This document shows, piece after piece, positions 11,363 through 63,689 of a DNA stretch of 64,000 nt; positions within the stretch are counted from its first letter, which is position 1, and each line of letters begins with the position of its first letter. The position numbers and the translations under genes were made by a program. The notes under the pieces are model-generated. The model worked only from the letters and a program-made list of their open reading frames with translations. It was not told the origin of the DNA and made no database searches. The DNA is from Octopus bimaculoides (Eukaryota), in the NCBI RefSeq assembly GCF_001194135.2, contig NC_069002.1:37120646-37184645 (forward strand), in the 5' to 3' direction.

Positions 11363-30180
<18,818 letters not shown>

Positions 30181-41424: not shown

Positions 41425-41466
41425 AAAAACAACAAACAATAAGTGTGAAGATTACCTATGTGAAGT

Positions 41467-41667
41467 TTATTTAAAAGCCAAGACTGCTTTTAATGAGAGA
41501 TGGTCTGATGGAAAGATTCTGTTTGGAATGAATTTGCAGTCAAGCACATTCTGTTTACTGGGAACTTGCAAGACACCGACAGCCTCTAAGCTGGTGGAAC
41601 TGTAGAAAACATAATCCAAACATTCCCGGGTGTGCAAAGTCATGGTGGTCAAGGCTGGTTCATTACT
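41467..41667 (-). CDS. EEP gene last coding exon (LDY and PSDH motifs)
   Basis: tttgaag|[23 protein letters not shown]...[19 protein letters not shown], stop TAA at 41467-41469; an alternative in-frame acceptor lies at 41727. Confidence 0.9.
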   Translation of the reverse strand, partial: SNEPALTTMTLHTRECLDYVFYSSTSLEAVGVLQVPSKQNVLDCKFIPNRIFPSDHLSLKAVLAFK

Positions 41668-44600
41668 CTTCAAAGAAATTGAAATAGTTAAAATATCAGT
41701 GAAATAATCACATTCCATTTTGGTTTCCTACAAAACTCTCACAACAAATTAACATTCATAATAACAAGCAGCTCAAAAAAATATTGATCTTTTAATAGTT
41801 TAACTGCAGGGGTGACGACCTATTCAAGAACAAAAAGAGAAATAAAATCCATTTAGGAAGATTTTCCTACCAAATAAACTGGATAATATTGCTTCCAAGT
41901 AATTTTCACAAAAATAACTTGTTCGTGATAAAATTGTTTGGAACAAATTGGTTTTCTAACACAACTATAGCTTTTATACTTATATACTAACACCACCAGT
42001 AGAGAAAAACAAATGTTAAACAATGATGATGGTGAGGAGTACCCATAGAGATGCCAGGGTAATTTTGAAAGCTAAGTTTATACAGAACCATGAAAAATAG
42101 AATTTCTTTAGAAATCAAGTTTTTTTTATTTCTTATGTTAAGTCATGGGTTGTACCAATGGCGCAATCAAAGGAGAAAATATCTTTGAAAACTGTATCCT
42201 TTATTAGCTCAGAAGTGATTTTTATGTTTAAAGCAACAAGGGAATGCACTTCAGTAATCTACATACAAGAAGAAACTGTTTTGCCTCTTGTTACCTTTTT
42301 CCCATTATAATGGTGCCATTAAAATTATTGAAAACATTATGTGTTCAGCAAGCTGCTTGAAATAATCTCAACTATGGAACAAAATCAAAGACATAAATCT
42401 GTTTATAATATTATTCTGCTAGGAATAGTAATTTGTTGGTAACGTTTTATTCATCATTGTTTTAATGTCTACTTTTCCATGCTTGCATGGGCTGGACAGA
42501 GTTTAAGGAGGTAGATTTTCTATGGCCTAATGACCTTCCTGTCACCAATCCACACTTGTTTCTAAACAAGTAATATTTCCCTATGGCCAGACATATTTTC
42601 ACAGAATATTCAAAATAAAGACCACTCTCTCGAACATGGGTTGCGTGGATCTCCTTGACAGCATTGCACAAGTACAACACGAGATCTTGTCGTTGGTATA
42701 TGTACATCTTTTACCATACACTGACCATGACTGTTGTCAACAGCTGGATTTGGTATAAACATCATGCCAGGTTGTTGGGTTTACAACCAATGAAACACAC
42801 CGTTTTCCAAGGGATGATTGCTGAAGCACCATGCCCTATGACACCACGCTCGGCAAAAATCATCTGTAGGAAAGCCCCAGTGGCTGACATCCGCCTGAGT
42901 ACACACCTGATTGACAGTGCTGCGAATACAAGGACTGTCAAGCACGCAGTCAAGTGAAGTGATGCAACATGTGGCTATGCTTGAACAAAGAAACTCTTTC
43001 ATGCAATTCCATGTTTGCAAGTGACATTCAGCAAATCAACTCAGTTTGACTGACATTGTAGTAAATATGTTTTGTTGTTTAATTAATAGTGCTAGATAAA
43101 ATTTGTACTCTTTGAAATGTTTAGTGAGATGCAAAGACCTATGTGCCAAATTTGGACCATTCGGTGACAATTCCTTAACAGTCAATTGTGCCAAATTTGG
43201 ACCATACCATATGATTTTGATTTTTGTATCCATTTGAATATCAAATTTACATGGAAAATAATTGTGTTGTTGGATGTAATGAGCACGTTCTAGAGGGTTA
43301 AATAAAAGGTAAAATTCAAACAGTTTCAGGTAGTTTGGTAACCAAATTACAGGTTGTTAGGTAACATGAGTTAATTAGATGAAATTATGACAAAATGTTT
43401 TAACTTTAGCATACTTCAAAATACTATGTTCTATATAACAGAAACAATTTTAGTAGGGATTAACATAACTTTTATTGATAATGTGTGTATCAATGAAGTC
43501 TCTTGACACTAAAAGTCAAAAATATTTATCAGGCAAACAATACAATTTACTAAGATTTCAGCTACAATGCCATTGATGACAAATAAGTGAAATTCATATA
43601 ATAAAGCAAACATTATAATGCTTACTATGAAGTAGAAACTAGATTTATGTTTTAGTAACAGGTTATCCAACTATTTTCTCTCTAAACCCCACCACCACCC
43701 ACAAAAATGGAAGAAAAGAGAAATGCAGAAACAATAGTTCTTACCTGTACAACAGCATAGGCACTCTTAAGACTGGATGAAGTGTGCTGGAATCCTTCCC
43801 AAAGATGATCTACAAGTGCCGATTTCTGTAAAATATTCAGCAATTTAAGAAATTCATTCTGTTTCTTCAAACTTTACATTGACTACTACAAATCAGTAAA
43901 ATATCTACCAAACATCTTCCACAAACAAACTAATTTTTCCTAATTACTATATTAGAACTACATCTTTTTTATTTAAATACAAAACTTTATGTACACTTGT
44001 ATTTTATTGAACAAACTCCAAAATGGGGGGGGGGAGAAAGTGAAGGAGAGAGAGAGAGAGAGAAGGGGGAAGATAGAGAGAAAGATTTATCTCATCATTT
44101 TTTATTTTTGGGGTTTAGTCATTGGACTGTGGCCATGTTGGGGATGGCCTTAAAGGGTTGAGTCAACCAAATAGACTCCAGCATTTATTTTTGAAGCCCA
44201 CTACCTATGTCAGTCTGTTTTTGCTAAACTGATAAGTTATGGGGACTTAAATGAATAAACACCAGTTGCCAAACAGTAGTAGAGGATAGACACAAACTCA
44301 ATGCAATGGGACTGACCCTGAAACCATGTGGTTGGGAAGCAAACTTCATACCACCAAAATCCAGCACTTCACTATATCTGGCAAAGACATTTAGGGCTCA
44401 ATTATCCAGTCTATCTACTTAAGGAAAGTTAGAGCCTTCTTAAAACAGCAAGAGAAAGAAAAAGATTGAAAACACTCTTGCAAATACTAGTGTTTCAACT
44501 TATGAGTTCAAATTTTTTTAGTATGAATAAAACCTGCTATAGGGTGCCCCCCCCCCATCGAGCGGGGAGGTGTCAGTTAACCACCTGCTACAGGCTGGCC

Positions 44601-47600
44601 CCTTGTCCAGTGGGGAGGTGTCAGTGAACCACTTTTATACTGGCCAAGTTACAATATACCACAACAGGAGAAAAATAAGCTGCAGCTGCATGTAATTAAT
44701 AATTCAATTGAGAATTTAATTTAATTTTATATAAATTTGTTCCATGGTGAAAAGTGAATTGAGATCAGTTTTGGACAGGGTTCTTTCTTCAAAGAAAAGA
44801 GACACGTAGTCCCAAGTTAGATTGAGAAGATCTTAGAACCAAAGACAGCTCCGATTTTCTTGCAGTGGAAAACATTTTAGACTGATGAAAAGTTTGGCAT
44901 TTTGGAATACGTGAAGTTTAATGGTTAAAACTATAAATGAAAAACGATGAAATCTAACAATAAAAGATAACTTTCTTAAAGAAATTGCACATAAAAATAA
45001 TAAAACCTACCGATCCATCGGGCATCTCCATTGTTTTAGAAGATTGTAAAAGCTGAATCATGGCATCTGCTAAGTAACCTTCCGATGCCAGTTGATAGCC
45101 AGGGGACTTTGGGCTAGAATTGAAGTCTCCACAAATCACATGAGGGTTAGAGTCACTGCCAGCTCGATTTACAACTTCCCTGATAGCTCGTGCAATCTAA
45201 AACATAAGAAAAAAAAACAAACTATTAAGGTTTTTCTCCATTGGCACAAGGACACAAATTTGTATTTGTAAGTCAATTGAAAACCAACCATGCTACTTTT
45301 GTAACATTTTATTGATGTAAAATGAAGTGAGACAAAAATGACCTGAATAGGAATCAAACTTACGACTAAACTAAATAGACTAAACAATCTGATATTACAT
45401 TTCTGCAATTCTTCCATAACAAGGATGATAACAGCCATCATTAAGGCCACACAATTAGAGGAAGATCACTAATTAATTGAACAGCATAATTATTGATTGC
45501 AATTTTGACACCCCACCACCACTACCATATCTAGTTTATCTGTTTACCCATGTTACCATTTGTTAGACAAATATATTGAGGTATAGTTTTACAGCCAAAT
45601 GCCCTTCCTGTCACTAATTTATACCTGTTTAACCATTTAGCATTTAAACTGGCCGTAAAAATAAACAATCACGTCAATAAAATGATTAATTTTAAAAAAT
45701 GTCAACATGCTAAAGAGTTAAAGTAAAAAAAAATTTTATTCCACAAATCTTAGAAAGCAGCAGAGACGATGACACCACCACCTGCAGCTCAGCAATTTTT
45801 GGAGAAGCATAAATTGAAATTAACTCTCACATACACCAGCAAAAACTGCCTCTATCGCTCTATGTACATTCACATACAAATGACAAGCTTCTAGTTTCCA
45901 CCTTATCAGATTTTATTCCAAAATATTAGCCAGCCTGTGTTGAAAGATTTTTGTTCAATATGTTATACAGTTGAAAAGCAAAGCCAGAACCACATAGTTG
46001 CAAGGCTATGCCATCTTAACAGCAAATACACTGAGCCCAAAAGAAGTCACTTACCTGGACACACTGAATGTTCGGAAGCTTGAAATTGCCCCAGTTGATA
46101 TGAACATTTCCAACTGTGATAAACTTGCCAGTATTTTTACATCGAAGCCTTGTAACAAGAAGTACATCAGGCAGACACATGAAGCGACGTACTGATTCTT
46201 TAACTTCTTCCGAGAGACTCATTTCTTGAATGTCCTATACAGAGAAATACAATTGCAGCCACGTATTAAGTAGAATTAAAAACTTAACATTTTTGAAGAG
46301 GACTTGAGATTTGGTCCAGTAGAAAAAAGTTTACATCAAAATTTCTGCAATGTTATAGGAGAGTAAGTGACACCTCCAATCAAGTTTAGATGTAATTTTT
46401 TTTATTTAAAAGCAAAATATATTTATCTTAGCTTCAATAATAGAAGAAAGCATAAAGAATTTCAGTTTTGGTCCCAAGCAACAAAAATTTGTATTAAAAA
46501 AAGTTGTGAGGTAAAATATCATGAAAAAAAATAGAAGGCAAAAATTTGTTGCTACAGGTAGATTGTACTAACTAATTATGTACTACTACTATTTTTTATA
46601 ATTGTAAAGTATGTTTAGAAAGTAGTTACTATGGACTTTTCATAGTGAGGCCAGGCAGTGGACAAGTTTCATGACCAACCATTTCACCTTGGTGAATAGT
46701 TGGAATTAGAACCAGCCTAGAAGAACTGAATACAGTACTGCTATTTACAAAGACAGCAGCTCTCCTCAGCAGTCATTTTACATCCATTGTTCCATGCTAG
46801 CATGGGCTGAACAATAAATACTATTGAGGCTTTTTTAACAGCTGGCTGCCCTTCCCATTGATAACCCAGGGGATATTTTTTTGTTTTGCTCTACTTGTCT
46901 TCAGAAGCACAGTTATAAGGATAACGTTTCTCACAAGGAATGTCGAACAAAAACTGTTTTTAGCTCAATGTTTTCATAAACACACAGATTGTAAACACTC
47001 ACTCAGACACACACACACACACACATGCGTGCAATGAACTTCCAAAGTTTCTGTTTATCAAATCTGGAGCCACGACAGAAGACATGATCCCATGCTAACA
47101 TGCAGTAAAACAGAACTTGAGCCGACATGAAACAAAGTGAACTCCATATCCCACACGACCAAGCCTAGTTGAGTGGGAGAGAACTTTGGGTTCTTTAGTC
47201 TTGGATGTTACAAGGCCACCACTTCACCAGTGCTGGAAAAGAAAAAACAAAACAAAAACAAAACCCACTGTGTAAAATGGCAGATATTAGGAAGGGTACC
47301 AGTCATTAAAACCAAACCAAAGATATTAGAGTGCAGCAGTCTTGCAATTTGTTGGGTCCTTGTCAAACTATCTTGCTGATGCCAGCATGAAAATAGACAT
47401 AAAATGATAATGATTACAATGACGATTCTGTCACATAAATTGCAGAGCTAGTAACAGGATTTAAAGAGCAAAAGCTCCTCCAGGCTACTTGTCCAACAAG
47501 TGTAATGAACCTGTCCTCAGTGATCCTGCAGATGAAGCCCAGTTGTCCACAACAAAAGAGATATATATATATTTACCTTGTCTATTAACTGTTTGAGACT

Positions 47601-49486
47601 GTAAGCTGTATTTTCAGGATCAGAAAAACGACTTGTCTTATAAAATGTTGTTTCCCCTTCATCATAGTTTTCATGAACTCTTTTTTTGTAAAAACCTTCA
47701 TACCCCAATCTGAAATTAAAGTAAAATTAATCAATAAGTTACAATGTTTTAATTAAAAAAAAATACAGCTTACAGAATATATTATAAATTTTTTAAAATT
47801 ACAAAAATACAGAATTACAACTCTTCATGGCAGTGAATGCAGACAACATTGGAATGTTCTTGGCAAACATGGATATTACAATTCTTACATGTAGTACAAG
47901 TCTTCCTGTCTTTTTTTAGGCCACATAAAGAACATCTTCCTTTTTCTTGGGCTGAGAAATCTCAAATGAAGTTTTCTTTTTTTGTTTCGTTAGAAGACTG
48001 TTGTTTATCACGTTCTTGTTTAGCATTAACTCCAGCAAGCTCCTCTCCTAACGGAATTAGGCACCGTCTTCTTTTATCCTTGAAACTTTAAAAGTGAAGC
48101 AGTTTAGCAACAATGAAAGCATTCACTGCACTTATATCAATCATGTTGTAGAATATAACCATGGGCCATCTTCGAGTCATTCTGTTGTAAGTGTATATAT
48201 ATCCTTACCATCTTATCTAGAGTATCAAATCCTCCTTTTGTTTTGTTGTAACATGTTATAACTCCAGGTTTCTTCTCAGCACTTTTCGAATCAATTGAAG
48301 GCTGAGAATGCATTGTACTCATAAGTGTGACTCTGTAATTTTTCTTGGGACAATAAGATAAGATCATAGAATCCTTTCGAAATCCAAATATTGTGCTCTT
48401 GATTTCTCTTTCTTGTCCATTTGTGAAAGCACTTGCCAGTTCAACTCTGTTCTTTCTAACTGTTCCAACTGAAGTAGTTTTCTTGCTAAGCAGCTTTCGA
48501 ACCAATCCTAGACATGGAAAAAAATTATCACAAATTCTATTGCAACCAGTTTTTTCAAGTTCTTCTACAAGGTCTTCAACAACTCTTGAACCTCCCTTTT
48601 ACTGGGCCCTTTCCAGTGTAGAATTGCATTTTCTAGGCATAAGATGTTTCACTGTCACATATTGCTCATACTCAGAATGGGTAGCGCCCTCTGAATGAAA
48701 CTAATTGTTCAACTCTCATGCGTGAAATTGGAACATATCGATCTTGCAAATTCTGATTCCACATTTCAAATACTTCATATCTATGTATATATGTGTGTGT
48801 GTGTATACGGGTGTCTGCTAGCAGCTAAGCCCGGTTTCATCCAGCTCGTATGGATGATGTGGTTGTAAAACCTGCTCTGTGTAAGCATTCAACTTGCTTA
48901 GGCACGCTTATGTTAAAAAACAATTTTAGAATGACTTTTTTCTGTCAAAACGCTAAAAACAGCTGACCAAAAGAAAAACACCCAATCAAGATTCAATCAA
49001 ATCAAAAAATATACCCAAATACTAAGCGAACAAAGATGAACCATACCACTTCCAATGCGCGCACACAGAGTTGAAACGCTGTTTGACTTATTTTTTCAGC
49101 ATACAATTTTCATCACCCCACGACCAAGTAGGACATCATCCCTTCCTCCCTTATTCATCTACCACCCCTTCCTTTCTCATTCATAAACACAAGAGTATTA
49201 TTATAGTAGATTATCTTGGTAACCATATACAAAGCCCAGCATCACCACTGGATTATTCTACATGGCTGTGAATTTTTTGCGCAATCCCACCCAGTCATTT
49301 GACCACAAATCCCAAGACGAGAAAGAATCGCCCATGTCAAATTTATATGTATAGATATAGATATCATCATCATCGTTTAACGTCCGCTTTCCATGCTAGC
49401 ATGGGTTGGACGATTTGACTGAGGACTGGTGAAACCGGATGGCAACACCAGGCTCCAATCTAATTTGGCAGAGTTTCTACAGCTGG

Positions 49487-49527
<41 letters not shown>

Positions 49528-49904
49528 ACTACATATGTGGGAAATTCTATGGTTTGAACTAAGCTTTATTGCCAATTCTTCAACTGATAATGCCGGGTTT
49601 TNNNNNNNNNNNNNNNNNNNNNNNNNNNNNNNNNNNNNNNNNNNNNNNNNNNNNNNNNNNNNNNNNNNNNNNNNNNNNNNNNNNNNNNNNNNNNNNNNNN
49701 NNNNNNNNNNNNNNNNNNNNNNNNNNNNNNNNNNNNNNNNNNNNNNNNNNNNNNNNNNNNNNNNNNNNNNNNNNNNNNNNNNNNNNNNNNNNNNNNNNNN
49801 NNNNNNNNNNNNNNNNNNNNNNNNNNNNNNNNNNNNNNNNNNNNNNNNNNNNNNNNNNNNNNNNNNNNNNNNNNNNNNNNNNNNNNNNNNNNNNNNNNNN
49901 NNNN

Positions 49905-49954
<50 letters not shown>

Positions 49955-51304
49955 TATATACACACACACACACATATATATACATACATATACACATATA
50001 TATGCAGATATACAGGAGTGGCTGTGTGGTAAGTAGTTTGCTTAACAACCACATGGCTCCGGGTTCATTCCCACTGCGTGGCATCTCGGGAAAGTGTCTT
50101 CTACTATAGCCTTGGGCTGACCAAAGCCTTGTGAGTCGATTCAGTAGACGGAAACTGAAAGAAGCCCGTCGTATATTTGTATATATATATATATATATGT
50201 ATGTGTTTGTCCCCGCCCAACATCACTTGACAACCAATGCTGGTGTGTTTAGGTCCCCGTAACTTGGCGGTTCGGCAAAAGAGACCGATAGAATAAGTAC
50301 TAGGCATCTAAAGAATAAGTCCTGGGCTTGATTTGCTCGACTAAAGGCAGTGCTCCAGCATGGCCACAGTCAAATGACAGAAACAAGTAAAAGAGTAAAA
50401 AGAGAGTATATATAGATATATATATAAATATATAAATCAGAAATGATCTAATTATAAACCTCACAGAGAGACTTAAGCAGCAGTGTTATGATAAAGCAGT
50501 TGTATACTGTCAACTCAACGTGACAGTCCCAATAAGGGAATCATACTGCTGCTATTTAGCCTGGACCGCTTCCTGTCAGCCTTGACACATTTCCTGTGTC
50601 CTTATGTTTGTGAGGGGGAGACAAGCACATCCACCCAGCCTAGCCTGCATTCAGGGACATGTTTCTGAGTCTTTGCTCGTCATCAGCCTGAAGTACCAAC
50701 ATTAGCTGGCTGAAAATGCCTGTCAACCCCTCGCAAACANNNNNNNNNNACATGTTTCTGAGTCTTTGCTCGTCATCAGCCTGAAGTACCAACATTAGCT
50801 GGCTGAAAATGCCTGTCAACCCCTCGCAAACATATATATTTCAAGTGAAAACACATCCACTGATTACAAAAATTAGAAATGATCTAATTATAAATCTCAC
50901 AGAGGGACTTAAGCAGCAGTATTACGATAAAGCAGTTGTATACTGTAAACTTAACATGACAGTCCCAATAAGGGAATCATACTGCTGCTATTTAGCCGAG
51001 GAAGCTGGACAAATGCCTGACTGGCCTTCGTGCCGGTGGCACGTAAAAGCACCCACTACACTCTGAGTGGTTGGCATTAGGAAGGGCATCCAGCTGTAGA
51101 AACTCTGCCAAACCAGATTGGAGCCTGGTGTAGCCGTCTGGTTTCACCAGTCCTCAGTCAAATCGTCCAACCCATGCTAGCATGGAAAGTGGACATTAAA
51201 CAACGATGATGATATATACATATATAAACATATGTTGAAGTAAATGTTTTTTTTTGTGTTTTTAAATGGCTTATAAACACCTTCCATGCTGCAATTGTGT
51301 TTAC

Positions 51305-51361
<57 letters not shown>

Positions 51362-51654
51362 ATATACATACACACACATATATGTATACATATACATAAA
51401 TATATATACATGTACACATATATATATTTACATGTATATATATATATATGTATGGATACATGTATATATATATGTATAAATAATACAAAATGGGACAAGG
51501 ATGCAAAACATCCAGACAGTTAGGTGATACACGAAAGGGACAAAACATAGATACACGATACCAAAAAACCCCAAAAAAGGTCATTTGGAGTTTTCTCTCT
51601 TCAGTCGAGATCCAGATTATCCTTGCAATTTCGGCTGGTTGTATATGTATGTAC

Positions 51655-51709
<55 letters not shown>

Positions 51710-54700
51710 CATATATATGTATTTATAGATTTAAACCAAAATTTAGCAAAAATATTGTATCTGTTATCAAACGTAGCAAAATACTCACAAGTGAATTTTT
51801 GTATTTATATCAATTTAAATAAGAGCTAAAATCTGATCCGTTTTAAAGACTTTATTATGACTTATGATCATTTCGATGCAATATCCAGATCGATTCATGC
51901 ATATTATAAAATATGGGATATTGTATCTCCTCAGGGTCGTATTAATACAAAGCAGACAGTAAAAATAAATAACATTCATAGACAAGATTCATAGTTGGCC
52001 TATAATTATATGTAAATAAACAAGTTGAAAAGACACGAGCTGCAATACCACCGTACAGCATATCAGTGTTGAAACCGTAAGAAGACCAAGCAAATGATAA
52101 CTGATGCAAATTTATGATGTTATTCTGTGAATTTCGATAACAAACCAATACGGAATGCTGTACATTTCAAAAAAGACCATTGGAGTTATGAAAGTAAATA
52201 AAAAATTCAGACTGAAAAAAACCGTTAGATATTAAAAATTTTTTAAAAATATAACAATATATTTTTTACACAAGTTAATGGTCACATCCACGCCCAACAA
52301 GCTTCCGCACAGTTTCTGTTTACCAAATTTCACTAACAAACTTTTCATTAACTAGAGTTATTTGTGAAAGGTGCTACACTTTGTGATTAAACTACACACA
52401 ATCACACACAAGTCAATCTGGAAAGTTAATAAAATAAAATGACTTACTTTTGCATATCAGGAGAGAGTGTCTTGCTATAGTACTCCGGTTCTACTTCCTG
52501 CAAACATACAACATCAGCATCTATGTAGGAGAGTTCAGCCATCAACCGTTTATGACGAGCTGGGAGCTCCAGAAAGAGTTTTTCTTCAGCAGGATAACGG
52601 TCTTTTATAACCTTGTGAAAATGACAGTCGGCAAGAATATTGTACGATACAACACTGAACTGTCTGCTCTTGTCCATAATTGTGTTGCTAGGGAGGGCTG
52701 GGTTGAATCTGAAAGTGCGACTGAGCAAGGTGTCTCGATTCGGGCTACTTCCTGAAGGACTACAACTCAACCCAGAACTTGCTGAGAGTTTAGGCAACTG
52801 AGGAGGAGCTGCACTCTGAGATGTAGGCAGTGGATGTTTCAGAGAGGGTTTCGGATTACTAGGCTGAGATTTCGGCAGTGACTGCCGAACTTCAACACTG
52901 TCTTTGGGAGGGACATCATCCTTGTTCACAACAACATAGTCTGTTAGTAAAGCATCAACATTTGAGCTGCTCTGTGTACTTGACTGAGAAACTTCTGTGG
53001 TTTCTGTCTTGTTTACTTTGCTTTCACCAGCAATCCTAGATGCTTGCTGAGAGCTTCTACTGGTCTTCTGGCCGTTAGCAACAAGATCTGCTTCTTCCTC
53101 AGCACTACGAGCTTTCTTTGAGCCGTGTGCGTCTTCCTCTGAGGAATCAGCTTTACGCTTTTTGCTTAGATCACATACTTGTTGAGATTCTGTTGACGTC
53201 TTGGTGCCGTTGATACCGTCAACTGATTCAGCTTTTGACGAGCCAGATGAAGTAACTAATAAAGGAGTACTGACAGGAGCAAAAGTGCTAACGGGGTGAC
53301 CTGCTGCTGAGTATGCAGGTTTGTTAAGTTGTGGTGTATTTACAGAACTTCCTGTGTTGTGCTGAGGTTTGGATGACATCATCTTGCTATCATGGCTGCT
53401 AGTTGTCACATTTAGTGCTCCACAACCGGTTACTGGAACTCCAGTCTTTGGATTTGATGTAACTGCTAGACTAGGCACTTTGTCGTGAGGTCCACTGAGA
53501 GGTTTGCTTCCAACTACAGTAGCATCAGGGACCATCGATTTCACTTTGAAACTGTCTTGGCTGTTGGCTGCAGATGCCTTTAAATCAATAGTTTCCTTCC
53601 TAAATTGATCTGTATTCCCAGGTGGGGACAAAAGGGGTTTAGGTTTATTGGCAGACAGATTGACTTCTTGAGGCTCTGATGCTCTTACAGTCTGAACGAC
53701 TGACTTTTGGGGATGTTGCAGCTGTTCACATTTCTGCTCTAAATTAAAACCTTTAGCATAGCTGACTGGTGATCCCTGTGGCCGGGGCATGTATGGATTT
53801 GACCCATCAGATTTAGGCATGTAATGTCCACCATACGGCTTCTGAGTCATATCAACTGGTAACCTTCCACAACCAGGATCAGAGCTCTTTGATGAAGACA
53901 TATATTTAGAGGGGTCCATGCCAAAAACAGGCACGGGTTGGGATTTCTCATGTAAAGATTTCGTTCTGTCTGTGTCTGCAGATGTGTTACTACCATGTGA
54001 CAATGTCTCCATCTTATTTGGAGATGGAGGCACAGAAGGAGATTGGCCAGAAGGGTGTGAAGAAATAGGTTTTGAAGCAGAACCCATGGCATGTAAAACA
54101 ACTGGCTTTGAAGAAAGGCCACTTTCACTAGATTGTATCTGAGGTTTTGGAGGAGCAACACCAGCCATGTGAGTTACCTGTGGCTTTTGTAAGGCAATCC
54201 CAGCCATATGTGTCACTGGAGGTTTTGAGAGTGCTGGCGATGGAGATGAAACTTTTGGTGGGACAGTTCCTGTCATATGAGTTATCTGAGGTTTACCAGA
54301 TGAAATGCTTGTACCATGAGCAACCACAGCCTTAGATGTTACCACCCCTGTCATATGAGTAATTTGAGGTTTGGCTGAATGAGCCATAGGAGGTTTCGAT
54401 GCAGCAATACTTCCAGGTGGACTGCCTGGAAGCTTGGCAAAACCAGCGCTGGGATGATGAGCTTCTTGAGTGGCTGGTTTGGGGGGCATTGTTCCCATAT
54501 GCCGTGACATGGCTGCACTATCTGCTGGAGACGAGGGTGTCTTTGGCATGGCAGACATAAGCATTGGATTTGAAGGGAATGTTGGAGAAAACGATTTGCT
54601 GGCTGACATATCAGATGTTGACATTGGTGGTTTTGATGACGACGAATAATAAACAGGGTTTGATGGAGCTGCATCAGATGGCAAGATAGGCTTCATGGAT

Positions 54701-57700
54701 GATGCAGTCACATGTGGTTTGTCCAAATAGTAAGGTTTGCTTTGCTTATGTTCTGCAGCAGTACTAGAAACTACTTTTGTATCAACATGTGTAGTGACCA
54801 GCGAAGGGGCCGTGGATATTTCAGCTGCTTGAGGAACTGATTTCAGAGACATCTGTGTAGCAGGGAGGGGTTTGCTGCAGTGGGTATCACTCTGCTGGGA
54901 ACTTGTTTTACTGTACAGAGAAGGTGAAGTCATTGAATGTTTTACTTCTGATGCTGGGCTATTTGGTTTTAAAGTAACCTTAGTTGGGGATGCAGTTACA
55001 ACAGGTGGCTTGCCAACTGAAAAATCTGGTGTTGGCTTACACGAAGGTATCCTTTGGGGTAAGGCAGCCGTAGTAGGTGGAGCATGCGCTGATGAAACTG
55101 ATTTGGAAAATCCGGTGTGTGGTGTTGATATCGGATATGATGTACAACTAGCATGAGGTGGCTTCAGAGACAAATCGTGTGTATGTGAAGGGTCTATATC
55201 TCGAGTGCCACTTGATACTCCAGATACATTCCCTGTACTCATTGCTTTCTCACTTGGCATTCCGCTCGTAACTGGTTGCTTATCTTTTGGTGGTGTAGAC
55301 TGAGGTGGGGTTTTGATATTAGAAACCATGGGCAAAGGCTCAGTAGGCCGAACAGAACTTACTGGAGTTGGAGAAGGTTTTCCTGAAAGGGATTCAACAT
55401 TGCTGGTCTTGGTACTTAGAGTAGATAACGAGGCAGGACCTGATGGTTTAGCAGGTAATGATTGTGAAGAAGTATAGCTCATTATCTTGGGGGTGACTGG
55501 TGAGCTATGTCCAGGTTGCTTTGAAGATAAATCAACACCTGTTTTGCTTGGTGACACTGCCAGTGAAGAACCTTCAGAAGGTCTTTGAGGTATTGTAGAG
55601 TGATCAGGTAACTTAGCAGGTGAGAAAGTAGAAGTGACAGGACTGGCTAATTTTACAGGAGAGCCATGCATGGTGACATGAGATCTGACAGGAGATCCAA
55701 CTTGGCTTGCTTCAGTGAAATGTTTAGAAGGAGAGTAAGCCATAATAGAAGGAGTGTGTGATTTGAGTTCAGGTTTTACAGGAGATTTAGCAGGGAAACT
55801 GCCGACACTAGGCACTGCAGATGGCTTGGATGATGGTGAAGTCACATTAGTTGTTGTTTGTGGTGGTGGAGTTCTCTCCATAGCAATGGTAGTCTTGGCA
55901 CTTGGAGCTTGAATTACAGGGGTTTTTGCACTAACCATGCTGAGCGGCTGAGTTATAGAAGGTTTTGCAGTTTTATCAGAAACAGCTTTATCTGACGGTA
56001 AGGGATGAGGTTTCATTTCTCCAGTGTTAGGTGGTTTACTACAAGTCACAACAGATTCAGACTTTGATGGAGAGCTCTTCAATAGGGGTGATGAATCAGG
56101 TACGTCTTTGCTTATTTTTGCAGAAACAGTCTCTGAATTAGATTTAGTCAAAGATGACTGAACTGGCAGGTCTTCAGTTTTGGGAACACTGGCTAATATT
56201 GGAGAAGATTTTGGTGCACTTTCAATTACAATGGACTCTGATTTAGAAACTGTTTTTACTGGTTCTGAAGGTTTGGTAAGATTCACTGGAGATTTAGCAG
56301 CAATTTTGGAAGGGGATTCCCTTTGCTGCTGGTGTTCAGCAGACACTGGTGAATGAAGCCCAGCTACAGCAGGTGGCGCTTTTGATATGTGAACTTCAGT
56401 TTGGTGTTTCACTGGACTCTTTGACAGATCAATTACACCAGTCGATGGAGTGGTCATTTTAGCTGTGGCCATTACAGTTGGTGTACTTGTTACAGTAGCT
56501 TGTACTGCTGCTGGTTCAGCTTTCTTGGGCGAGCAAACTGCTGAAAGTGGTTGCTTTGTGGGAGTTTTCTTGGGCGATGGCGTCTGAGATATCTTTGTCG
56601 GACTCTCAACCACATCAACTTCCATATCAGTCTCAATTCTTTCTGTTGTTTTCGATTCAGTAAATGATGTTACAGCTGCTGGAATCTGTTTCTTTTCTTC
56701 GGCTTTCTTCTCAGATTCAGCCAACTTGGGCTTCTGATCAACAGTACTGCTTTTGCTAACCTCAACGGTAGCCCCTGCTATTTCCTCTGGAGCAACTTTA
56801 GTGGATTCCTTTTCTGGAGATGTTTCAGTAGCTCCTTTGCCAACACGCTTCTTTTTCAAAGCTGGTGAAATAGATTCTGGTGATTTTTCAATTTCAACAG
56901 CGCCCCTTTTGCGACATTTTGAATCAGAGGAGATGGACTGTTCTGATTCTTTGGTCGTGCCTTTAAGACCAGAGTCCTCACTGCTCTCCTTTGTTCCACT
57001 CTTTGCATCACTTACTCGGTCAACATCACTCACCGCTTTACTTTCACTTTCCTCAACCACATCACTACTTTCTTTCTTGCCTGTTTCTTTCTCTTCCTCT
57101 CCTGACTTGCTCGCATCTTCACCACTGACTTCCTTTGATTGTCCCCTGCTCCTTGCACGAGCAGCACGCCCCTTCGGCTCTTCAACAACAGAATCAACCT
57201 CCTCCTCCTCTTCTGCAGCTTTCTTCCCCTGGCCCCTACTTCTGGATCTCGCCGTTCTACCTTTCGCTACTTCTTCAGTCACTGCATCCTCGGATTTTCG
57301 ACCCACAGACCTCCGGCTCCTCGACTCAGGACGCGCTTCACTATCAGCGGAAGCTTGCTTTTTGTTTGGAGTTTTCCCTTTGTCCTGATCCTCTTCAGCA
57401 CTAGCCTCTTCCTCTTTAGTAACAGTTTCTTTGACAGACGGAGATTTTCCTTTACGTGTTGCAGCACTTTGTCCCTTCTTTTCAGCAGCAGCAGCTTGGC
57501 CCCGCCCTGCTTTACCCCGTGCTGGGGTCTCTTTCACTTCAGATTGAGACTTTGACCGGCTTCGGCCTTTTGTAGCGGGAGTAGTGGTCTCTTCCTCAGA
57601 TGATGACTCTTCTTCCTCTTCAGCTTCTTTACTTTGCCGACTCTTTCCTTTAGCAGCACTTTTGGCAGAGGACTGCCGTCCTATCGTCCGACCACCACTG

Positions 57701-59100
57701 GCTGGGGTCTTCTTGGAATCACCTAAAAATTATGAAAAAATACACATTTTATTTATATCCACACAAAATCCAAATCTGTTCACAATAAACCCTACCTATA
57801 GTGGCACCAAGACTGGGTGATGCTATTAACAGTAAAGGATCCTGGTAGGTGCAGACTCCAGTTATTAAAGCTCGAATGAAATAATTAAATGAGACTTAAT
57901 AAGGCTCAACTTTCAAAGACCCTCATCAGTTTCAGCTACTCCAAAAGAGAACCATTCTTCAGATCATTAATGCCTTCCTCTTTATTGCTAATCATAGTGT
58001 ACAGTTACCATTTATGGTAAATTGCCACACCAGATTATTGAACCAACTGGAATACTTTATTCACAACTGGCAAAGGGCCAGTTTCACGGTTTAGTATTCA
58101 GATTACTCTGCCAAGTGTAATGCTTATCGACTCACATTGCTTTGAATTAATCAGGCATTGTCTCATAGCTTTGACATTTTGGTGATATGATAGTTTATTT
58201 TTAGAATGACATTGTAGGGTAGGTGGGAGAGGCTGGATCTGGCTGGTTTGAACATAAAACGAGTAGAATATTTGAGCCAGACACGGCCAGTTCAAATGCT
58301 AAAAGGTTAACGTGTAAGTGAAATAGAACAGTTGAAAACTGAAACCAGGTCACGAGGATTAAATCTAAGCTCTATATCTCTTGCCCTAGCTTAAAATGCA
58401 AGATTAAAAATTAATTCACTCCAATCTACCAAGTAAGAATAGGGACCACCATTATAACCACACTTACCTGATGGCAATAACTTAAATTAGCAAATGTGAA
58501 AGTCTGCTAGAAATTACCCCCTACTGTCTTTATAAAGCAACAAATGTAGTCTTAGAAGACAATGTCAGAGGAAAAGACAGTAAGGTCTCATAGATCTGGG
58601 GATCAAAGCTAAACCTGTTGTACATATTGCTTTTTACAATATTAGAGCTACTCATTATTTTACTTACAGCACTATTACTGTATTTTCTGACCCAAATTAA
58701 CAAGAAGAAAAAAGGAGATCAACTTTAGGCACCGAATTGACTTTGGAGGACCAAACATTCCATGTGAAATGCAGTGGGATTTGGAAAGACAGGAACAATA
58801 TTTGAAGGATTACACTAGATACTACACTGATTTGTAATGCTGGAAAATTATGGTCAGTCAATTCTAAATGTCCACTGACATAAATATAGTCTGCTGAGAA
58901 GTTAGTGACAACACAGTAACCAATAGTAGAACACAATACCTGATTGTTTACTGGCAGGAGTCCGAGGTGAACGCTGACTTGCTTTGGGAGTTTCTTCTTT
59001 CACCTTACTTTTTGCTCCTTTTGCTGCTGCCCTACAAATGAGAACCATAAAGTTTTCAACATAGTTTAGCAATTAAATAGCAAGAAAGCAAAACCTATTG

Positions 59101-59138
<38 letters not shown>

Positions 59139-59958
59139 CGTGTGTAAATGGAAAGAAAACAGAACTTCAATATTCAAGTTTTGTATAAAACAATGAACAA
59201 TCCTTTTGTATGGTAAATTAGATTCTAAAATAACTAAAGTAATAATAAAACAAGTGAATAGTTTACCAAAGTTAAACTCTTTTGATGCCAATCTGTCTAA
59301 GACTACTTTTAGTTCTAATATGAACTTAAAATGTTCGTATTTAAATTAAAGCTTCTATCATAAACTTCATGTGAAAAATATTTTGCAGTTTTAAACACTT
59401 GCTCAATAACAAGAAACTTATTTTACTAAATCTTTACAAAAATGTATCTTAACAGAAATATAGTCACCAGAAGGTGAAAGATATCAACACACTATTCCAA
59501 AATTTGGTATAGAGTAACAAAGCTTTTGTCCACCTATCTGATTATTTGCTAATTATACCAATTATATTTGTTGAAAGAGTTCCGAGCCATAAACTAACTT
59601 GGTCAAACCATAGAAATATGTAGAAAAAATGCTGAAATAATTACAGCCACATAATTATTACTTAGTACCATTAAGTAGCCAAGACAAACTGAACTCTCTA
59701 TTTACACAAGATACGCAAAGATTACTTCTATAACTCTGTAGATAAGAGAAAATGGAGGTATACAACAATAAAATCAACTTACTTTCCTTTAGGCGAAGGG
59801 CTGGCAGCACGTGTCTTGGGAGTGGGCTGCTTAGCTGTAGTGGAGGAACTTTGACTGCGAGACACTCGAATAATGGGACTTGGAGAAGCAGAAGCTTTTA
59901 CAGCCGCCCGAGGGCTACGCCGTGGGGCTGGACTAGATTCTTCACCTCTGCGTGGCAT
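41467..59958 (-). CDS. ~2107-aa protein: ~1770-aa low-complexity/disordered N-terminus plus C-terminal EEP domain of the CCR4/PDE12/Angel/Nocturnin family
   Basis: complement(join(41467..41667,43745..43825,45011..45196,46055..46234,47577..47709,52448..57722,58940..59031,59783..59958)) = 6324 nt, phases consistent, all GT-AG. EEP motifs: [78 protein letters not shown]. Subfamily cannot be assigned by eye, so no symbol is given. Confidence 0.9.
42630..43301 (+). mobile_element. 3' part of a decayed piggyBac element (PGBD2/3-like transposase C-terminus and right end)
   Basis: NMGCVDLLD then, frameshifted, [41 protein letters not shown]; 19-bp subterminal direct repeat TGTGCCAAATTTGGACCAT at 43142 and 43187; terminal CTAGAGGG-TTAA at 43290-43301. 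Confidence 0.75.
43745..43825 (-). CDS. EEP gene coding exon 7
   Basis: ttacag|[27 protein letters not shown]|gtaaga. Confidence 0.9.
45011..45196 (-). CDS. EEP gene coding exon 6 (GDFN motif)
   Basis: ttttag|[40 protein letters not shown]...PDGS|gtaggt. Confidence 0.93.
46055..46234 (-). CDS. EEP gene coding exon 5
   Basis: gtatag|[10 protein letters not shown]...[40 protein letters not shown]|gtaagt. Confidence 0.92.
47577..47709 (-). CDS. EEP gene coding exon 4
   Basis: tttcag|[44 protein letters not shown]|gtaaat. Confidence 0.92.
48110..48680 (-). mobile_element. piggyBac transposase relic (PGBD4-like DDD core)
   Basis: Frameshifted [31 protein letters not shown]; ORF 48137-48505 has [48 protein letters not shown]. 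Confidence 0.85.
50015..50400 (+). mobile_element. tRNA-derived SINE, second family, near full length
   Basis: A-box-like TGGCTGTGTGG, B-box-like GGTTCATTCCC, GGCAAGTGTCTTCTACTATAG-like body, (TA)n middle. Related copies near 4425, 17010(-), 17288, 23095, 27590, 27860, 30540, 35500(-), 35830(-), 44100(-) and 61850(-). Confidence 0.8.
50434..50997. repeat. Partial tandem repeat A-B-A' containing the hammerhead candidate
   Basis: 128-bp blocks 50434-50561 and 50870-50997 differ at 8 positions by my count. Confidence 0.85.
50650..50692 (-). ncRNA. Minimal type I hammerhead ribozyme candidate
   Basis: Minus strand reads UUCAGG-CUGAUGA-C GAG CAAAGA CUC A-GAAAC AU GUC-CCUGAA: perfect 6-bp stem I, both core motifs, short stem II with a C.A closing mismatch, palindromic ACAUGU stem III, GUC cleavage triplet. 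Folded by eye. Confidence 0.72.
51008..51213 (+). mobile_element. (GAT)n-tailed SINE-like repeat, third family
   Basis: AGGAAGGGCATCCAGCTGTAGAAAC...CCAACCCATGCTAGCATGGAAA...GATGATGAT; reversed copies at 3885-4000 and 49363-49491, older copies near 6120, 8640 and 13825. Confidence 0.8.
52448..57722 (-). CDS. EEP gene giant coding exon 3 (5275 nt): disordered region plus start of EEP domain
   Basis: tttttag acceptor at 57723-57724; stop-free frame continuous with the 1697-aa ORF in the track; ends ..[26 protein letters not shown]|gtaagt. Confidence 0.93.
58090..58310 (-). mobile_element. Reversed copy of the piggyBac-type MITE family
   Basis: Shares TTTTAGAATGACATTGTAGGGTAGGTG..GAGAGGC and ends ATGCTAAAAGGTTAA. 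Confidence 0.7.
58940..59031 (-). CDS. EEP gene coding exon 2
   Basis: tttgtag|[31 protein letters not shown]|gtattg; phase 2 to 1. Confidence 0.82.
59783..59958 (-). CDS. EEP gene first coding exon ([17 protein letters not shown]...SPSPKG)
   Basis: Acceptor ttttccag at 59982-59983, ATG at 59958, donor GTAAGT at 59782; ends in phase 2, matching the next exon. The acceptor implies a further upstream non-coding exon that was not located. Confidence 0.8.
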
Positions 59959-60984: not shown

Positions 60985-61847
60985 CTGTAACACCCAAGGG
61001 AGAGGAAAGTCCTCATGAGATGATGGACAAAGGTTGCAAATCGACTCAACCAACATCCCAAAAGTAGCAAAAGGTCCCGCCTAAAACCAACACTGATGGA
61101 GATTGAAAGAAGGCTGCAACAATCCTATGTGAGGGAGAGAGCAGACAAAGGAGCCAGGTTTATAAAAAACATTAAGTCAAACCCAAAGGCATTCTTTCAT
61201 TACGCCAGAGAAACAGCCTCAGTACGCTGCAAGACAGGACCCTTCCAACTAGGATCAGTGAGGTACTGAATGACCAGTTCAAAAGTGTCTTTACCACCCA
61301 GTTGGAACACAGAGAAGCGAACGAACCAGTGGACTTCTTTGCCGCCTCACCTATAACCAGTGAGGCAGTTACAATGGAATACATTGACATTAGCGAAGAA
61401 AATATACTACTAGCTGTAGATGAAGTGGACACAAACTCAACTGCTGGTCCTGATGGTTTCCCAGCAATCCTCCTAAAATTGTGTAAGCATGCCCAGGCAA
61501 AACCCCTCCAGATTCTCTTCCAGAGCTTTCTTGCAAATGGCAGACTGCCAAGCAAGCTGAAGGGGGGAATAATATGCCCAATCCATAAAGGGGGAAGCAG
61601 AGCAGATGCCAAAAACTATAGGACTATCTCTCTGACTTCACACATCAGCAAAGTCATGGAACGGATAGTCAGAGGGAAACTAATCGCATTCCTTGAAGAA
61701 AATAACTTGCTGAGTGATACCCAACATGGCTTTCGACCAGGTAGGAGCTGCCTGGCCCAGCTCTTACAACATTATGACTGGGTGTTGAGGCAGTTACTCA
61801 ACAACTCAAATGTGGACGTAATATACCTTGATTTTGCAAAAGCTTTT
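60985..61847 (+). mobile_element. CR1/L2-like LINE fragment, N-terminal half of reverse transcriptase
   Basis: IKSNPKAFFHYA; AGPDGFPAILLK, ICPIHKGGSRADAKNYRTISLTSHISKVMERIV, QHGFRPGRSCLAQLL, VDVIYLDFAKAF, then abrupt truncation. Confidence 0.9.
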
Positions 61848-62287: not shown

Positions 62288-62325
<38 letters not shown>

Positions 62326-63660: not shown

Positions 63661-63689
63661 TATTTATATATAAGTATAGATATATATAT

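Follow-up and report, generated by a model that had tools for sequence, protein, structure and literature searches.

A long disordered arm joined to a CCR4/PDE12-type EEP domain in Octopus bimaculoides: a possible nuclear, nucleosome-tethered phosphodiesterase

Gene structure and transcript support

The window is a stretch of 64,000 nucleotides of Octopus bimaculoides DNA (NC_069002.1, positions 37,120,646 to 37,184,645), in which a gene of eight minus-strand coding exons, all with GT-AG junctions, extends from 59958 to 41467 (Table 1). It encodes 2107 residues with a single terminal stop: a long N-terminal arm (residues 1-1774) followed by an EEP catalytic domain. The ends of the interval coincide exactly with the ATG and the stop codon, and an in-frame stop is found four codons 5' of the ATG. 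The translation is identical to a RefSeq protein named 'mucin-17 [Octopus bimaculoides]' (P0121).

Exon 3 is open over 1758 codons, which has a chance probability of ~1e-41, and its other two frames contain 74 and 150 stops. The part of the EEP domain that shares exon and frame with the arm includes N1784 and E1832. A full-length RNA-seq contig from another octopus (L001; SRR3401912, an octopus meta-transcriptome, PMC11662614) connects all eight exons, including exon 3 straight to exon 4. The locus is one real gene, with arm and EEP domain in a continuous frame, and the fusion proposed in a preliminary description of this DNA is borne out by the shared exon and by this contig. An EEP-only isoform, starting for example at M1772, may exist.

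Table 1. Features of the arm-EEP gene (window coordinates)
Feature	Position	Strand	Residues	Remarks
Coding exon 1	59783..59958	-	1-59	ATG at 59958; RNA contig maps to 59982-59782
RRSPR	59908..59922	-	13-17	candidate HMGN/Dsup-like arginine anchor for nucleosome acidic patch
Coding exon 2	58940..59031	-	60-90	K/A/S-rich
Giant coding exon 3	52448..57722	-	90-1848	5275 nt; nearly all of arm and first ~75 EEP residues, one open frame
Basic/acidic N-terminal arm region	56611..57720	-	91-460	three KGRxxRSRSRGQ-type repeats (aa 141, 243, 273) and E-rich tracts
S/T/P-rich disordered middle	53191..56610	-	461-1600	71 S/T-P sites
Four KPQ[IV]THM[TA]G repeats	54160..54372	-	1207, 1233, 1256, 1269
Classical bipartite NLS, KKRK-x11-KKAR	53107..53163	-	1610-1628	predicted
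Conserved linear motif	52870..52941	-	1684-1707	[DE][YF][VE][VI][VI]xxx[DE][VIL]Pxx[DN]SxEV
Conserved N-terminal extension of EEP	52699..52728	-	1755-1764	strand in AF2 model
EEP catalytic domain (PF03372)	41470..52668	-	1775-2107	end of exon 3 and exons 4-8
Intron 3	47710..52447	-		both N gaps, microsatellites, piggyBac-type transposase remnant
Coding exon 4	47577..47709	-
Coding exon 5	46055..46234	-		NVHINWGN segment
Coding exon 6	45011..45196	-		GDFN
Coding exon 7	43745..43825	-
Coding exon 8	41467..41667	-		LDY, SDH; stop 41467-41469; transcript runs on to 41456
Catalytic codons	52639-41; 52495-97; 46100-02; 45125-27	-	N1784; E1832; H1937; D1976
Catalytic codons	45119-21; 41614-16; 41500-05	-	N1978; D2059; D2096/H2097
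3'UTR exon	40242..40774	-		inferred from related octopus transcript; 3'UTR intron begins 11 nt past stop

The RefSeq name, the S/T/P-rich composition and the N gaps within the locus could suggest an artefact, either two genes fused across gaps or a secreted mucin; this reading is refuted. Fusion is ruled out by the exon and frame common to the arm and the first 75 EEP residues, and by the contig spanning all exons. A secreted mucin is ruled out, as no signal-peptide-like or TM-like segment was found in the arm and no DNA tandem repeats in the S/T/P-rich middle or the giant exon. Orthologues have the same architecture. The name 'mucin-17' is a misnomer.

The two N gaps (49602-49904 and 50740-50749) both lie within intron 3, in which no coding exon of this gene was found using the PDE12 alignment and the RNA contig. 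As human PDE12 aligns gaplessly over the exon 3/4 junction (..|LGYEGFYKK..) and the contig joins the two exons, no coding sequence is missing at the gaps. A perfect 83-nt duplicate flanking the 10-N gap points to an unmerged assembly overlap.

The EEP domain and its active site

Among enzymes with the CCR4-type EEP fold, PDE12 is 2',5'-phosphodiesterase 12 and also a mitochondrial poly(A) nuclease, ANGEL2 is a 2',3'-cyclic phosphatase and Nocturnin (NOCT) is an NADP(H) phosphatase. PF03372 matches residues 1782-2097 of the octopus protein with an E value of 4.5e-15. All eight catalytic residues (N1784, E1832, H1937, D1976, N1978, D2059, D2096 and H2097) are intact, in agreement with the preliminary description. 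The AlphaFold model of the domain has a pLDDT of 95.7 and fits CNOT6L and PDE12 about equally, CNOT6L being the top Foldseek match (E 1.5e-27, TM 0.79), followed by PDE12 (1.8e-26), ANGEL2 (7e-24) and NOCT (1e-22). By sequence, the nearest solved structure is PDE12 (E 3.7e-28), which aligns over the whole EEP domain with ~28% (27-29%) identity and the same eight catalytic residues. ANGEL2 (4e-17) and NOCT (4.5e-13), both aligning only in part, are farther from the octopus domain than PDE12 and CNOT6L. Identity to CNOT6L/CNOT6 is ~25%, and the CNOT6L Mg2+ ligands E240, D410, N412 and H529 have conserved octopus equivalents. The octopus domain is apparently an active Mg2+-dependent RNA or nucleotide phosphodiesterase, to judge from these residues.

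The substrate pocket differs. In the sequence alignment of the loop regions, Pro365 and Phe484, which sandwich the adenine in CNOT6L, correspond to N1942 and T2054. The Pro/Phe pair is also conserved in PDE12 and Ccr4, and the Phe equivalent to F484 in plant CCR4 as well. The 'HP' and 'GF.G.LDY' pocket residues of PDE12 are likewise replaced. The earlier remark that the NVHINW segment fits none of the known enzymes thus reflects a real feature of the family. Because the adenine-sandwich residues are replaced, strict poly(A)- or 2-5A-specificity like that of CNOT6L or PDE12 is unlikely.

Relatives and relation to PDE12

The closest relatives, with EEP domains 45-53% identical, are found in gastropods, bivalves, annelids, a nemertean and a brachiopod. 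They are catalytically intact proteins of 545-1146 residues with homologous disordered arms of ~200-800 residues. Armed orthologues are also present in chelicerates and a myriapod, with EEP domains 31-36% identical to that of octopus. The subfamily had been described as possibly lineage-restricted, which does not hold with this distribution, and the N-termini of the known CCR4, PDE12, Angel and Nocturnin enzymes as far shorter, whereas the closest relatives have arms with the same modules. Orthologues include Patella KAK6170497, Pecten XP_033740793 ('unc-89-like'), Mya XP_052808907 ('futsch-like'), Owenia CAH1798443, Tubulanus XP_074663057 and Centruroides XP_023241899. Like the octopus protein, the protostome orthologues start with MPR…, followed by tracts that are first basic and then acidic, and carry a bipartite NLS as well as the EEP domain at the C-terminus; unlike it, they have shorter arms without the S/T/P-rich insert and without THM repeats. 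On these comparisons, the gene belongs to an uncharacterised protostome family that combines a long disordered basic arm with a C-terminal CCR4/PDE12-type EEP domain, and is its orthologue in cephalopods.

An octopus orthologue of PDE12, CNOT6, ANGEL or NOCT with an acquired N-terminal extension would account for PDE12 ranking first by sequence among the solved structures and for automatic names of relatives such as 'PDE12-like' and 'CCR4-like'. This very improbable alternative is largely refuted. The preliminary description had proposed a search of this genome for separate CNOT6, PDE12, ANGEL and NOCT orthologues, and a separate PDE12 was indeed found: XP_052821724.1, 624 residues, with the PF21171 N-terminal domain. 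PDE12 and an arm-EEP-type gene also occur together in Owenia, Patella, Sinanodonta, Mya, Strigamia, Protopterus and Branchiostoma. In a neighbour-joining tree of EEP domains, from which ANGEL and NOCT were left out, the octopus domain falls outside a PDE12 clade with 100% support. PDE12 is the sister group (82% support for the grouping), and the new clade as a whole is weakly supported as monophyletic (44%). Identity to PDE12 is only 27-29%, ANGEL2 and NOCT score lower in both sequence and fold, and the octopus protein has neither PF21171 nor the LRR with which CNOT6 docks on CAF1. Since O. bimaculoides has its own PDE12, the arm-EEP domain is classified from sequence and tree as a paralogue, not an orthologue, of PDE12; nor is it an orthologue of CNOT6.

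The chelicerate and myriapod orthologues are catalytically dead through loss of the active-site E, H and D, so that catalysis is possibly dispensable for the conserved role of the family. The protein might then be chiefly a nuclear scaffold or adaptor, whose conserved function would rest on the arm and on the EEP domain as a ligand binder, the octopus catalytic residues being dispensable. The dead orthologues do keep arm, NLS and domain, and dN/dS is 0.14-0.25 within residues 1051-1650 of the arm. However, octopods have all eight catalytic residues, as do nearly all sampled members from spiralians, deuterostomes and cnidarians, apart from Acanthosepion, Tegillarca and Owenia, where the sequence has gaps or the model is truncated. 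Among octopods, the arm has a dN/dS of 0.31 and the EEP domain one of 0.09; both are under purifying selection, with a much stronger constraint on the EEP domain. A scaffold role is therefore doubtful.

The arm and the proposed function

The arm contains 18% Ser, 11% Pro and 10% Lys, with a pI of 9.64 and a GRAVY of -0.78. The Pfam search of the protein returned no domain besides PF03372, and AlphaFold applied to residues 1000-1780, with only four close sequences as input, gave a pLDDT of 35 and no secondary structure. The arm is intrinsically disordered and basic, and the earlier statement that it contains no recognisable folded domain stands.

BLAST alignments reach into the arm, as far as residue 1609 with Pecten, and the segment 1684-1707 forms a separate match to Patella (E 8e-7). 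Residues 91-460 are weakly alignable to the Owenia and Pecten arms. NLS, YVV and LLxR motifs are common to the octopus protein and its orthologues, the YVV motif to spiralian ones only, and most of the spiralian and arthropod orthologues checked have the bipartite NLS in the corresponding place. As judged from these alignments, a modular arm is shared across Spiralia. The S/T/P-rich middle is absent from the non-cephalopod orthologues compared. Its KPQ[IV]THM[TA]G repeats do not vary among four octopod sequences, recur in the giant-exon ORF of a decapodiform (P0164), and were found in no further protein among 380 fetched. In this comparison, the ~1100-residue insert with its repeats is the sole cephalopod-specific part of the architecture.

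RRSPR is the sole RRS.R of the octopus protein. Within the first 60 residues, RRS.R occurs in 8 of 20 orthologues versus 0.36 expected, and no more than 4 in any of 5000 shuffles, which ignore relatedness between sequences; it is missing or changed in the other 12. The variable position is Pro in octopus, and limpets have RRSSR and a spider RRSAR. The motif is short and lies within R/S-rich sequence. RRSAR of HMGN2 and RRSSR of tardigrade Dsup are acidic-patch anchors by cryo-EM (PMC12487698). Like HMGN and Dsup, the octopus protein is disordered, basic and K/S/A-rich with an N-terminal RRSxR. It has no overall homology to them and no Pfam HMG14_17 match, its motif is joined to an enzyme domain that both lack, and nucleosome binding by this motif is a prediction.

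A cytoplasmic mRNA deadenylase, with the arm as a scaffold or P-body-like condensate tether and chromatin not involved, would fit a fold whose nearest relatives are PDE12 and the poly(A) nuclease CNOT6L, and a long S/T/P/K-rich disordered region typical of condensate scaffolds. Unique regions of CCR4-type enzymes determine localisation and partners (review, PMC6284557). The equivalently placed NLS, the lack of an LRR or other CAF1/NOT-docking module and the replaced adenine-sandwich residues make this rather unlikely. PDE12 is reported as mitochondrial in titles cited in the same review, whereas the octopus N-terminus is of a nuclear type, with a predicted NLS and a basic disordered region.

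Because the arm modules RRSxR, bipartite NLS and [DE][YF]VV[VI]…DVP…DS.EV are conserved, the best reading is a nuclear, possibly nucleosome-tethered EEP phosphodiesterase with a long arm, to which a probability of about 0.55 is given. The nuclear or chromatin tethering first suggested gains support from the NLS and RRSxR. The NLS would bring the protein into the nucleus, where RRSPR, like its HMGN and Dsup counterparts, together with K/R-rich tracts, would tether it to nucleosomes or chromatin. With its flexible arm, the enzyme would gain access to RNA associated with chromatin and hydrolyse its 3' phosphodiester ends through the EEP domain, or act on a related nucleotide substrate. The cephalopod insert, with its S/T-P sites and four repeats, most likely adds phospho-dependent partner-binding sites and not a fold. 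The motif at residues 1684-1707, by its consensus, may resemble a SIM or LIR β-strand motif.

Gene model and transcript

The window has a GC content of about 36% and many microsatellites. On its minus strand, a 5.3-kb open frame is preceded by two short exons for basic peptides and followed, in the direction of transcription, by five short frames carrying EEP motifs. Reading of the junctions gave eight exons (see the table), with canonical GT-AG borders throughout and consistent phases, for a product of 2107 aa with a single terminal stop. An in-frame stop lies four codons 5' of the ATG. The preliminary description had placed the gene at 41467-59958, which are the exact limits of the coding sequence. 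The translation is 100% identical to database protein P0121, named 'mucin-17 [Octopus bimaculoides]' by NCBI.

Features of the gene and its surroundings (window positions)
Feature	Position	Strand	Remark
Exon 1	59958-59783	-	GT-AG junction reading
Exon 2	59031-58940	-	GT-AG junction reading
Exon 3 (giant)	57722-52448	-	GT-AG junction reading
Exon 4	47709-47577	-	GT-AG junction reading
Exon 5	46234-46055	-	GT-AG junction reading
Exon 6	45196-45011	-	GT-AG junction reading
Exon 7	43825-43745	-	GT-AG junction reading
Exon 8	41667-41467	-	GT-AG junction reading
3'UTR exon	40774-40242	-	SRR3401912 contig; 3'UTR intron
Intron 3	52447-47710	-	contains both N runs below
N run	49602-49904		inside intron 3
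N run (10-N gap)	50740-50749		inside intron 3
83-nt perfect direct duplicate	50657-50739 and 50750-50832		either side of the 10-N gap
133-nt repeat, 92% identity	50429-50561 and 50865-50997		encloses the 10-N gap and the 83-nt duplicate
piggyBac-type transposase remnant	48598-48140, fragments down to ~47818	-	inside intron 3; 153-aa ORF, Pfam DDE_Tnp_1_7, E 3.9e-17
ORF with MYST zinc finger	22672-23367	+	Pfam zf-MYST, E 8e-22
LINE-like reverse-transcriptase fragment	61302-61871	+	Pfam RVT_1, E 2e-8
LINE-like reverse-transcriptase fragment	62894-63559	-	
480-N gap	62326-62805		adjoined by the LINE-like fragments
Long microsatellites (examples)	49480-50060, 51180-51720, 62225-62850, 63650-63940		(TA)n, (TATG)n, (TG)n types; abut N gaps

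An orthologue of 2108 aa (P0124), 85% identical to the O. bimaculoides protein, is encoded by a 6903-nt contig built from the reads of SRR3401912. In blastn, this contig matches every one of the eight exons at identical borders and runs from exon 3 directly into exon 4. As SRR3401912 is an octopus meta-transcriptome (PMC11662614), it provides evidence at the RNA level, from a related octopus, that the arm and the EEP exons are carried by one mRNA. In this transcript, 11 nt follow the stop codon (41456-41466) before the splice to the 3'UTR exon, the 3'UTR intron being very near the stop.

The human PDE12 alignment is gap-free across the exon 3/4 junction. The shorter of the two N runs in intron 3 most probably marks an overlap that the assembly left unmerged, with a true gap length of zero or less. 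Since the PDE12 alignment is gap-free, the contig joins the exons and the 83-nt duplicate flanks the 10-N gap, no coding sequence is hidden in the gaps of this intron.

The joining of so long an arm to an EEP domain could be suspected of being a gene-fusion artefact. Exon 3 encodes the start of the domain (~75 residues, N1784 and E1832 among them) in one frame with the arm, so that the fusion is intrinsic to the exon and independent of splicing. With the RNA contig joining all exons, the artefact was rejected. Given the base composition of the exon, a stop-free frame of 1758 codons would arise by chance with a probability of about 1e-41, and the other two frames of the giant exon contain 74 and 150 stops. 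Both parts of the protein are under constraint: compared with the SRR3401912 orthologue, dN/dS (Nei-Gojobori) is 0.09 for the EEP domain and 0.31 for the arm, with 0.14-0.25 in the stretch aa 1051-1650. The gene model and the fusion of arm and EEP domain are real with near certainty.

An in-frame methionine at aa 1772 (window ~52675-52677), 10 residues before the EEP core, is invariant in octopods and not kept outside cephalopods. It could in principle serve as the start of an EEP-only isoform.

The EEP domain and its place among CCR4-type enzymes

The sole Pfam match in the protein is PF03372 at aa 1782-2097 (56.4 bits, cut-off 24.5). The catalytic and metal-binding set had been described as intact, and all eight residues (N1784, E1832, H1937, D1976, N1978, D2059, D2096 and H2097) are indeed present in the alignment with PDE12, Ccr4 and plant CCR4, as well as with D410, N412, D489 and H529 of CNOT6L. 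The domain was modelled by AlphaFold2 from 55 homologues with a pLDDT of 95.7 and a pTM of 0.94. A Foldseek search of the PDB returned CNOT6L (E 1.5e-27, TM 0.79), PDE12 (1.8e-26), ANGEL2 (7e-24) and Nocturnin (1e-22), all with probability 1.00, TDP2 and bacterial EEPs being far behind. By sequence (phmmer) the order is PDE12 (3.7e-28), CNOT6L (2e-19), ANGEL2 (4e-17) and NOCT (4.5e-13). The octopus protein is, by its modelled fold, a structural member of the CCR4-type EEP phosphodiesterases, predicted to work likewise, and its residues make a catalytically competent domain likely. The enzymes of this type studied so far (CNOT6/6L, PDE12, ANGEL1/2 and NOCT) have nearly the same active site and yet differ widely in substrate.

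In CNOT6L, Pro365 and Phe484 stack on either side of the scissile adenosine, which is also contacted by Asn412 (PMC4032980). In the alignment these residues correspond to N1942, T2054 and N1978 of the octopus protein, where only the asparagine is kept. The Pro ('[HD]P' after H..W) and the Phe ('GF.G.LDY') are kept in PDE12 and Ccr4, the Phe also in plant CCR4. Where PDE12 has 'HP' after NTHLYW and the Phe of GF.G.LDY, the octopus has WGN and HTRECLDY, and the two pocket positions are taken by M, T, Q or S in the long-armed proteins of spiralians. The remark in the preliminary description that the NVHINW segment fits none of the known enzymes thereby acquires substance, as a family-level change of the pocket at N1942/T2054 in the alignment. 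With such a pocket, the enzyme is unlikely to be strictly specific for adenine in the manner of CNOT6L or PDE12.

Relatives were collected by an exhaustive HMMER scan and by name look-ups, and 51 EEP domains were placed in a bootstrapped neighbour-joining tree with Kimura-corrected distances, a distance tree rather than a maximum-likelihood one, which covers neither ANGEL nor NOCT. The octopus domain falls in a metazoan clade apart from PDE12, LRR-bearing Ccr4, plant CCR4 and the zf-C6H2 EEPs. Bootstrap support for the monophyly of this whole clade is moderate only (44-78%).

PDE12 gives the best phmmer score, and the gene could be read as its orthologue. In the tree, PDE12 is monophyletic with 100% bootstrap and the octopus domain lies outside that clade. 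O. bimaculoides has its own PDE12, XP_052821724.1, a protein of 624 aa with the N-terminal domain PF21171, and Owenia, Patella, Sinanodonta, Mya, Strigamia, Protopterus and Branchiostoma likewise have both a PDE12 and a gene of the clade of the octopus domain. The relation of the locus to PDE12 is therefore one of paralogy. PF21171 is carried by nearly all of the 120 true PDE12s among the matches listed, whereas a Pfam scan found no match to it anywhere in the 2107-aa protein. With the pocket residues also replaced, orthology to PDE12 was rejected. The protein differs from CNOT6 by the same replacements and by the lack of the N-terminal LRR that docks on CAF1: no LRR was matched by Pfam in the octopus protein, and fungal and holozoan Ccr4 matches carry PF12799, PF13855 or PF23598. 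ANGEL and NOCT, both absent from the tree, score below PDE12 and CNOT6L in phmmer and Foldseek. A separate subfamily of CCR4-type EEP enzymes is very likely. The earlier suggestion of such a subfamily was reasonable, being upheld against PDE12 and Ccr4 by the tree and the separate PDE12 gene.

That this subfamily is restricted to one lineage, and that the N-termini of its relatives are far shorter, proved wrong at the level of the family. Long disordered arms are also found in proteins with EEP domains 45-53% identical to that of the octopus. In molluscs these are from Patella (1049 aa), Lottia (917), Mya (918/970), Pecten (1047), Sinanodonta (1014), Tegillarca (1110), Plakobranchus (1020), Arion (960), Bulinus (889/1034), Batillaria (837) and Nucella (1063/1146); elsewhere, from the annelids Owenia (1062) and Helobdella (680), the nemertean Tubulanus (985), the orthonectid Intoshia (897) and the brachiopod Lingula (545). 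At a greater distance (31-36% identity) are the relatives from the scorpion Centruroides (1024 aa), from two spiders, Nephila (931) and Parasteatoda (719), and from the centipede Strigamia (1018). A word-indexed search with a 355-aa EEP query had returned only relatives of up to 545 aa, missing the identical 2107-aa protein and all long-armed orthologues; its negatives are therefore unreliable for C-terminal domains of long proteins, and taken alone it would have wrongly backed the restricted distribution. The long-armed orthologues were recovered by the exhaustive scan, and a query with the arm also corrected the picture.

In the chelicerate and myriapod proteins (P0157 of Centruroides, P0163 of Parasteatoda, P0167 of Strigamia and P0172 of Nephila) the Glu, His and Asp of the active site are gone (e.g. 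CLQQV, NVQIPP, GGEFN), but the arm with its MPRK… start, RRSxR and NLS is kept, and so is the EEP fold. Judging from these substitutions, they are natural pseudo-enzymes of the family. With presumably active spiralian and dead arthropod members, the family provides a natural pair by which catalytic and scaffold roles could be told apart.

None of the relatives for which the source was looked up is from an insect, a nematode, a teleost or a tetrapod. This would explain why full-text literature searches found no description of a long-armed EEP family. In databases, the octopus protein is present under automatic names only. The locus is a conserved but unstudied protostome branch of the CCR4-type EEP enzymes, with a distinctive arm expanded in cephalopods.

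The arm and a possible link to chromatin

The arm (aa 1-1774) consists of 18% S, 11% P, 10% K, 9% A and 8% T, with 2.3% F+Y+C, and has a pI of 9.64 and a GRAVY of -0.78. As first described, no folded domain is recognized upstream of the EEP domain: the full Pfam scan gave no match in the arm, and scans of fragments at E <= 10 gave neither HMG14_17 nor any other meaningful match. AlphaFold2 returned a pLDDT of 35 and no secondary structure for aa 1000-1780 from a shallow alignment of four sequences, which is weakly consistent with disorder.

The database name, and an S/T/P-rich composition, would suit a mucin. No signal-peptide-like or transmembrane-like stretch was found in the arm, where the N-terminus is hydrophilic and the maximal 19-residue Kyte-Doolittle value is 0.86. 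TRF detected no DNA tandem array in the giant exon, and the arm has only a few repeated 5-mers. With neither a signal peptide or transmembrane segment nor a tandem-repeat PTS array, the mucin reading was rejected. 'Mucin-17' is a compositional misnomer and, like the RefSeq names 'futsch-like', 'unc-89-like' and 'starmaker-like' in this family, an artefact that needs correcting.

Five modules recur along the arms of the family, and the octopus protein has all of them, with segments at aa 1-17, 1610-1628, 1684-1707 and 1755-1764. The first is an N-terminus of the form MPRx(T)R…; in 8 of 20 orthologues RRSxR comes after it, at residues 13-44: RRSPR in the octopus (aa 13-17, its sole RRS.R), RRSSR in limpets, RRSVRLSS in the database protein P0142, RRSTR, RRSGR or RRSAR in chelicerates and RRSNR in Mya. 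These eight compare with 0.36 expected and a maximum of 4 in 5000 shuffles. N-terminal alpha-methylation (X-P-K) of the MPR/MPPK N-terminus was also considered and dropped, most orthologues falling outside that consensus. The second module comprises K/R/S-rich tracts with KGRxxSRSRG-type repeats (RGRP AT-hook-like cores in several species), then acidic tracts. The third is a bipartite NLS, KRK-x(9-20)-KKxR, in the corresponding place in most of the spiralian and arthropod proteins inspected (octopus aa 1610-1628). The fourth, in most spiralians checked, is a 24-residue motif, [DE][YF][VE][VI][VI]xxx[DE][VIL]Pxx[DN]SxEVxxSLP (octopus aa 1684-1707), and the fifth, LLxRxFxxNP, directly precedes the EEP domain. 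Composition-corrected BLAST alignments run from the domain into the arm as far as aa 1609 with Pecten and about aa 1660-1669 with others, and a separate HSP covers the YVV region, the fourth module, with Patella (E 8e-7). By sequence comparison, the arm is neither featureless nor unique to the octopus lineage.

What is specific to cephalopods is an S/T/P-rich insert of ~1100 aa between the acidic region and the NLS. Its four KPQ[IV]THM[TA]G repeats are invariant in four octopod sequences and are found again in P0164, a 1413-aa giant-exon ORF of a decapodiform genome, where the exon has the same …SPDMQR border at its end. They occur in no other of the 380 proteins compared.

In cryo-EM structures, RRSAR of HMGN2 and RRSSR of the tardigrade protein Dsup act as arginine anchors on the nucleosome acidic patch, and more proteins of the RRSxR type were predicted in protostomes by the same authors (PMC12487698). 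The octopus RRSPR, in a disordered basic protein, resembles the RRS[AS]R core, but has Pro at the variable position. As scans of arm fragments gave no HMG14_17 match, the link to HMGN is one of a short motif, which lies in R/S-rich sequence and is missing from 12 of the 20 orthologues.

A mechanism may be proposed from these elements. The conserved bipartite NLS would direct nuclear import, and the N-terminal RRSxR would mediate association with chromatin, the arm serving as a long flexible tether with many S/T-P sites. Using a base pocket different from those of CNOT6L and PDE12, the EEP domain would cut chromatin-associated RNA at its 3' phosphodiester ends, or hydrolyse a related nucleotide. 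Judging from the NLS, the protein is probably nuclear. RNA 3' ends are a putative substrate at somewhat less than even odds, and binding of nucleosomes by the candidate RRSxR, which is argued by analogy, is more tentative still. The nuclear or chromatin-tethered role first suggested was a reasonable proposal, and the conserved NLS and RRSxR now put specific motifs behind the tethering. The full reading is given a probability of about one in four: an ancient, undescribed protostome family in which RRSxR and the NLS would tether, through a long arm, an EEP nuclease with a non-adenine-specific pocket to chromatin, the arthropod members having become dead scaffolds and the cephalopods having doubled the arm with the KPQ[IV]THM[TA]G module. 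If true, it would exemplify the 'untapped realm' of HMGN-motif chromatin proteins (PMC12487698) and add a functional class of CCR4-type EEPs. Confirmation of the nuclear and acidic-patch link of the arm would tie hydrolysis of RNA or nucleotide phosphodiesters directly to chromatin, and give the HMGN/Dsup motif class an enzyme-bearing addition.

Other features of the window

Scans for Rfam families and tRNAs found none in the whole 64,000-nt window. The piggyBac-type remnant in intron 3 includes a downstream ORF with a Cys/His-rich tail; it is probably a dead insertion, as its frames are broken. The ORF with the MYST zinc finger belongs, as one of its exons, to an adjacent gene for a MYST histone acetyltransferase, which runs on the other strand. 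The LINE-like fragments lie just 5' of the gene. Long microsatellites abut nearly every N gap and probably explain the assembly breaks there.
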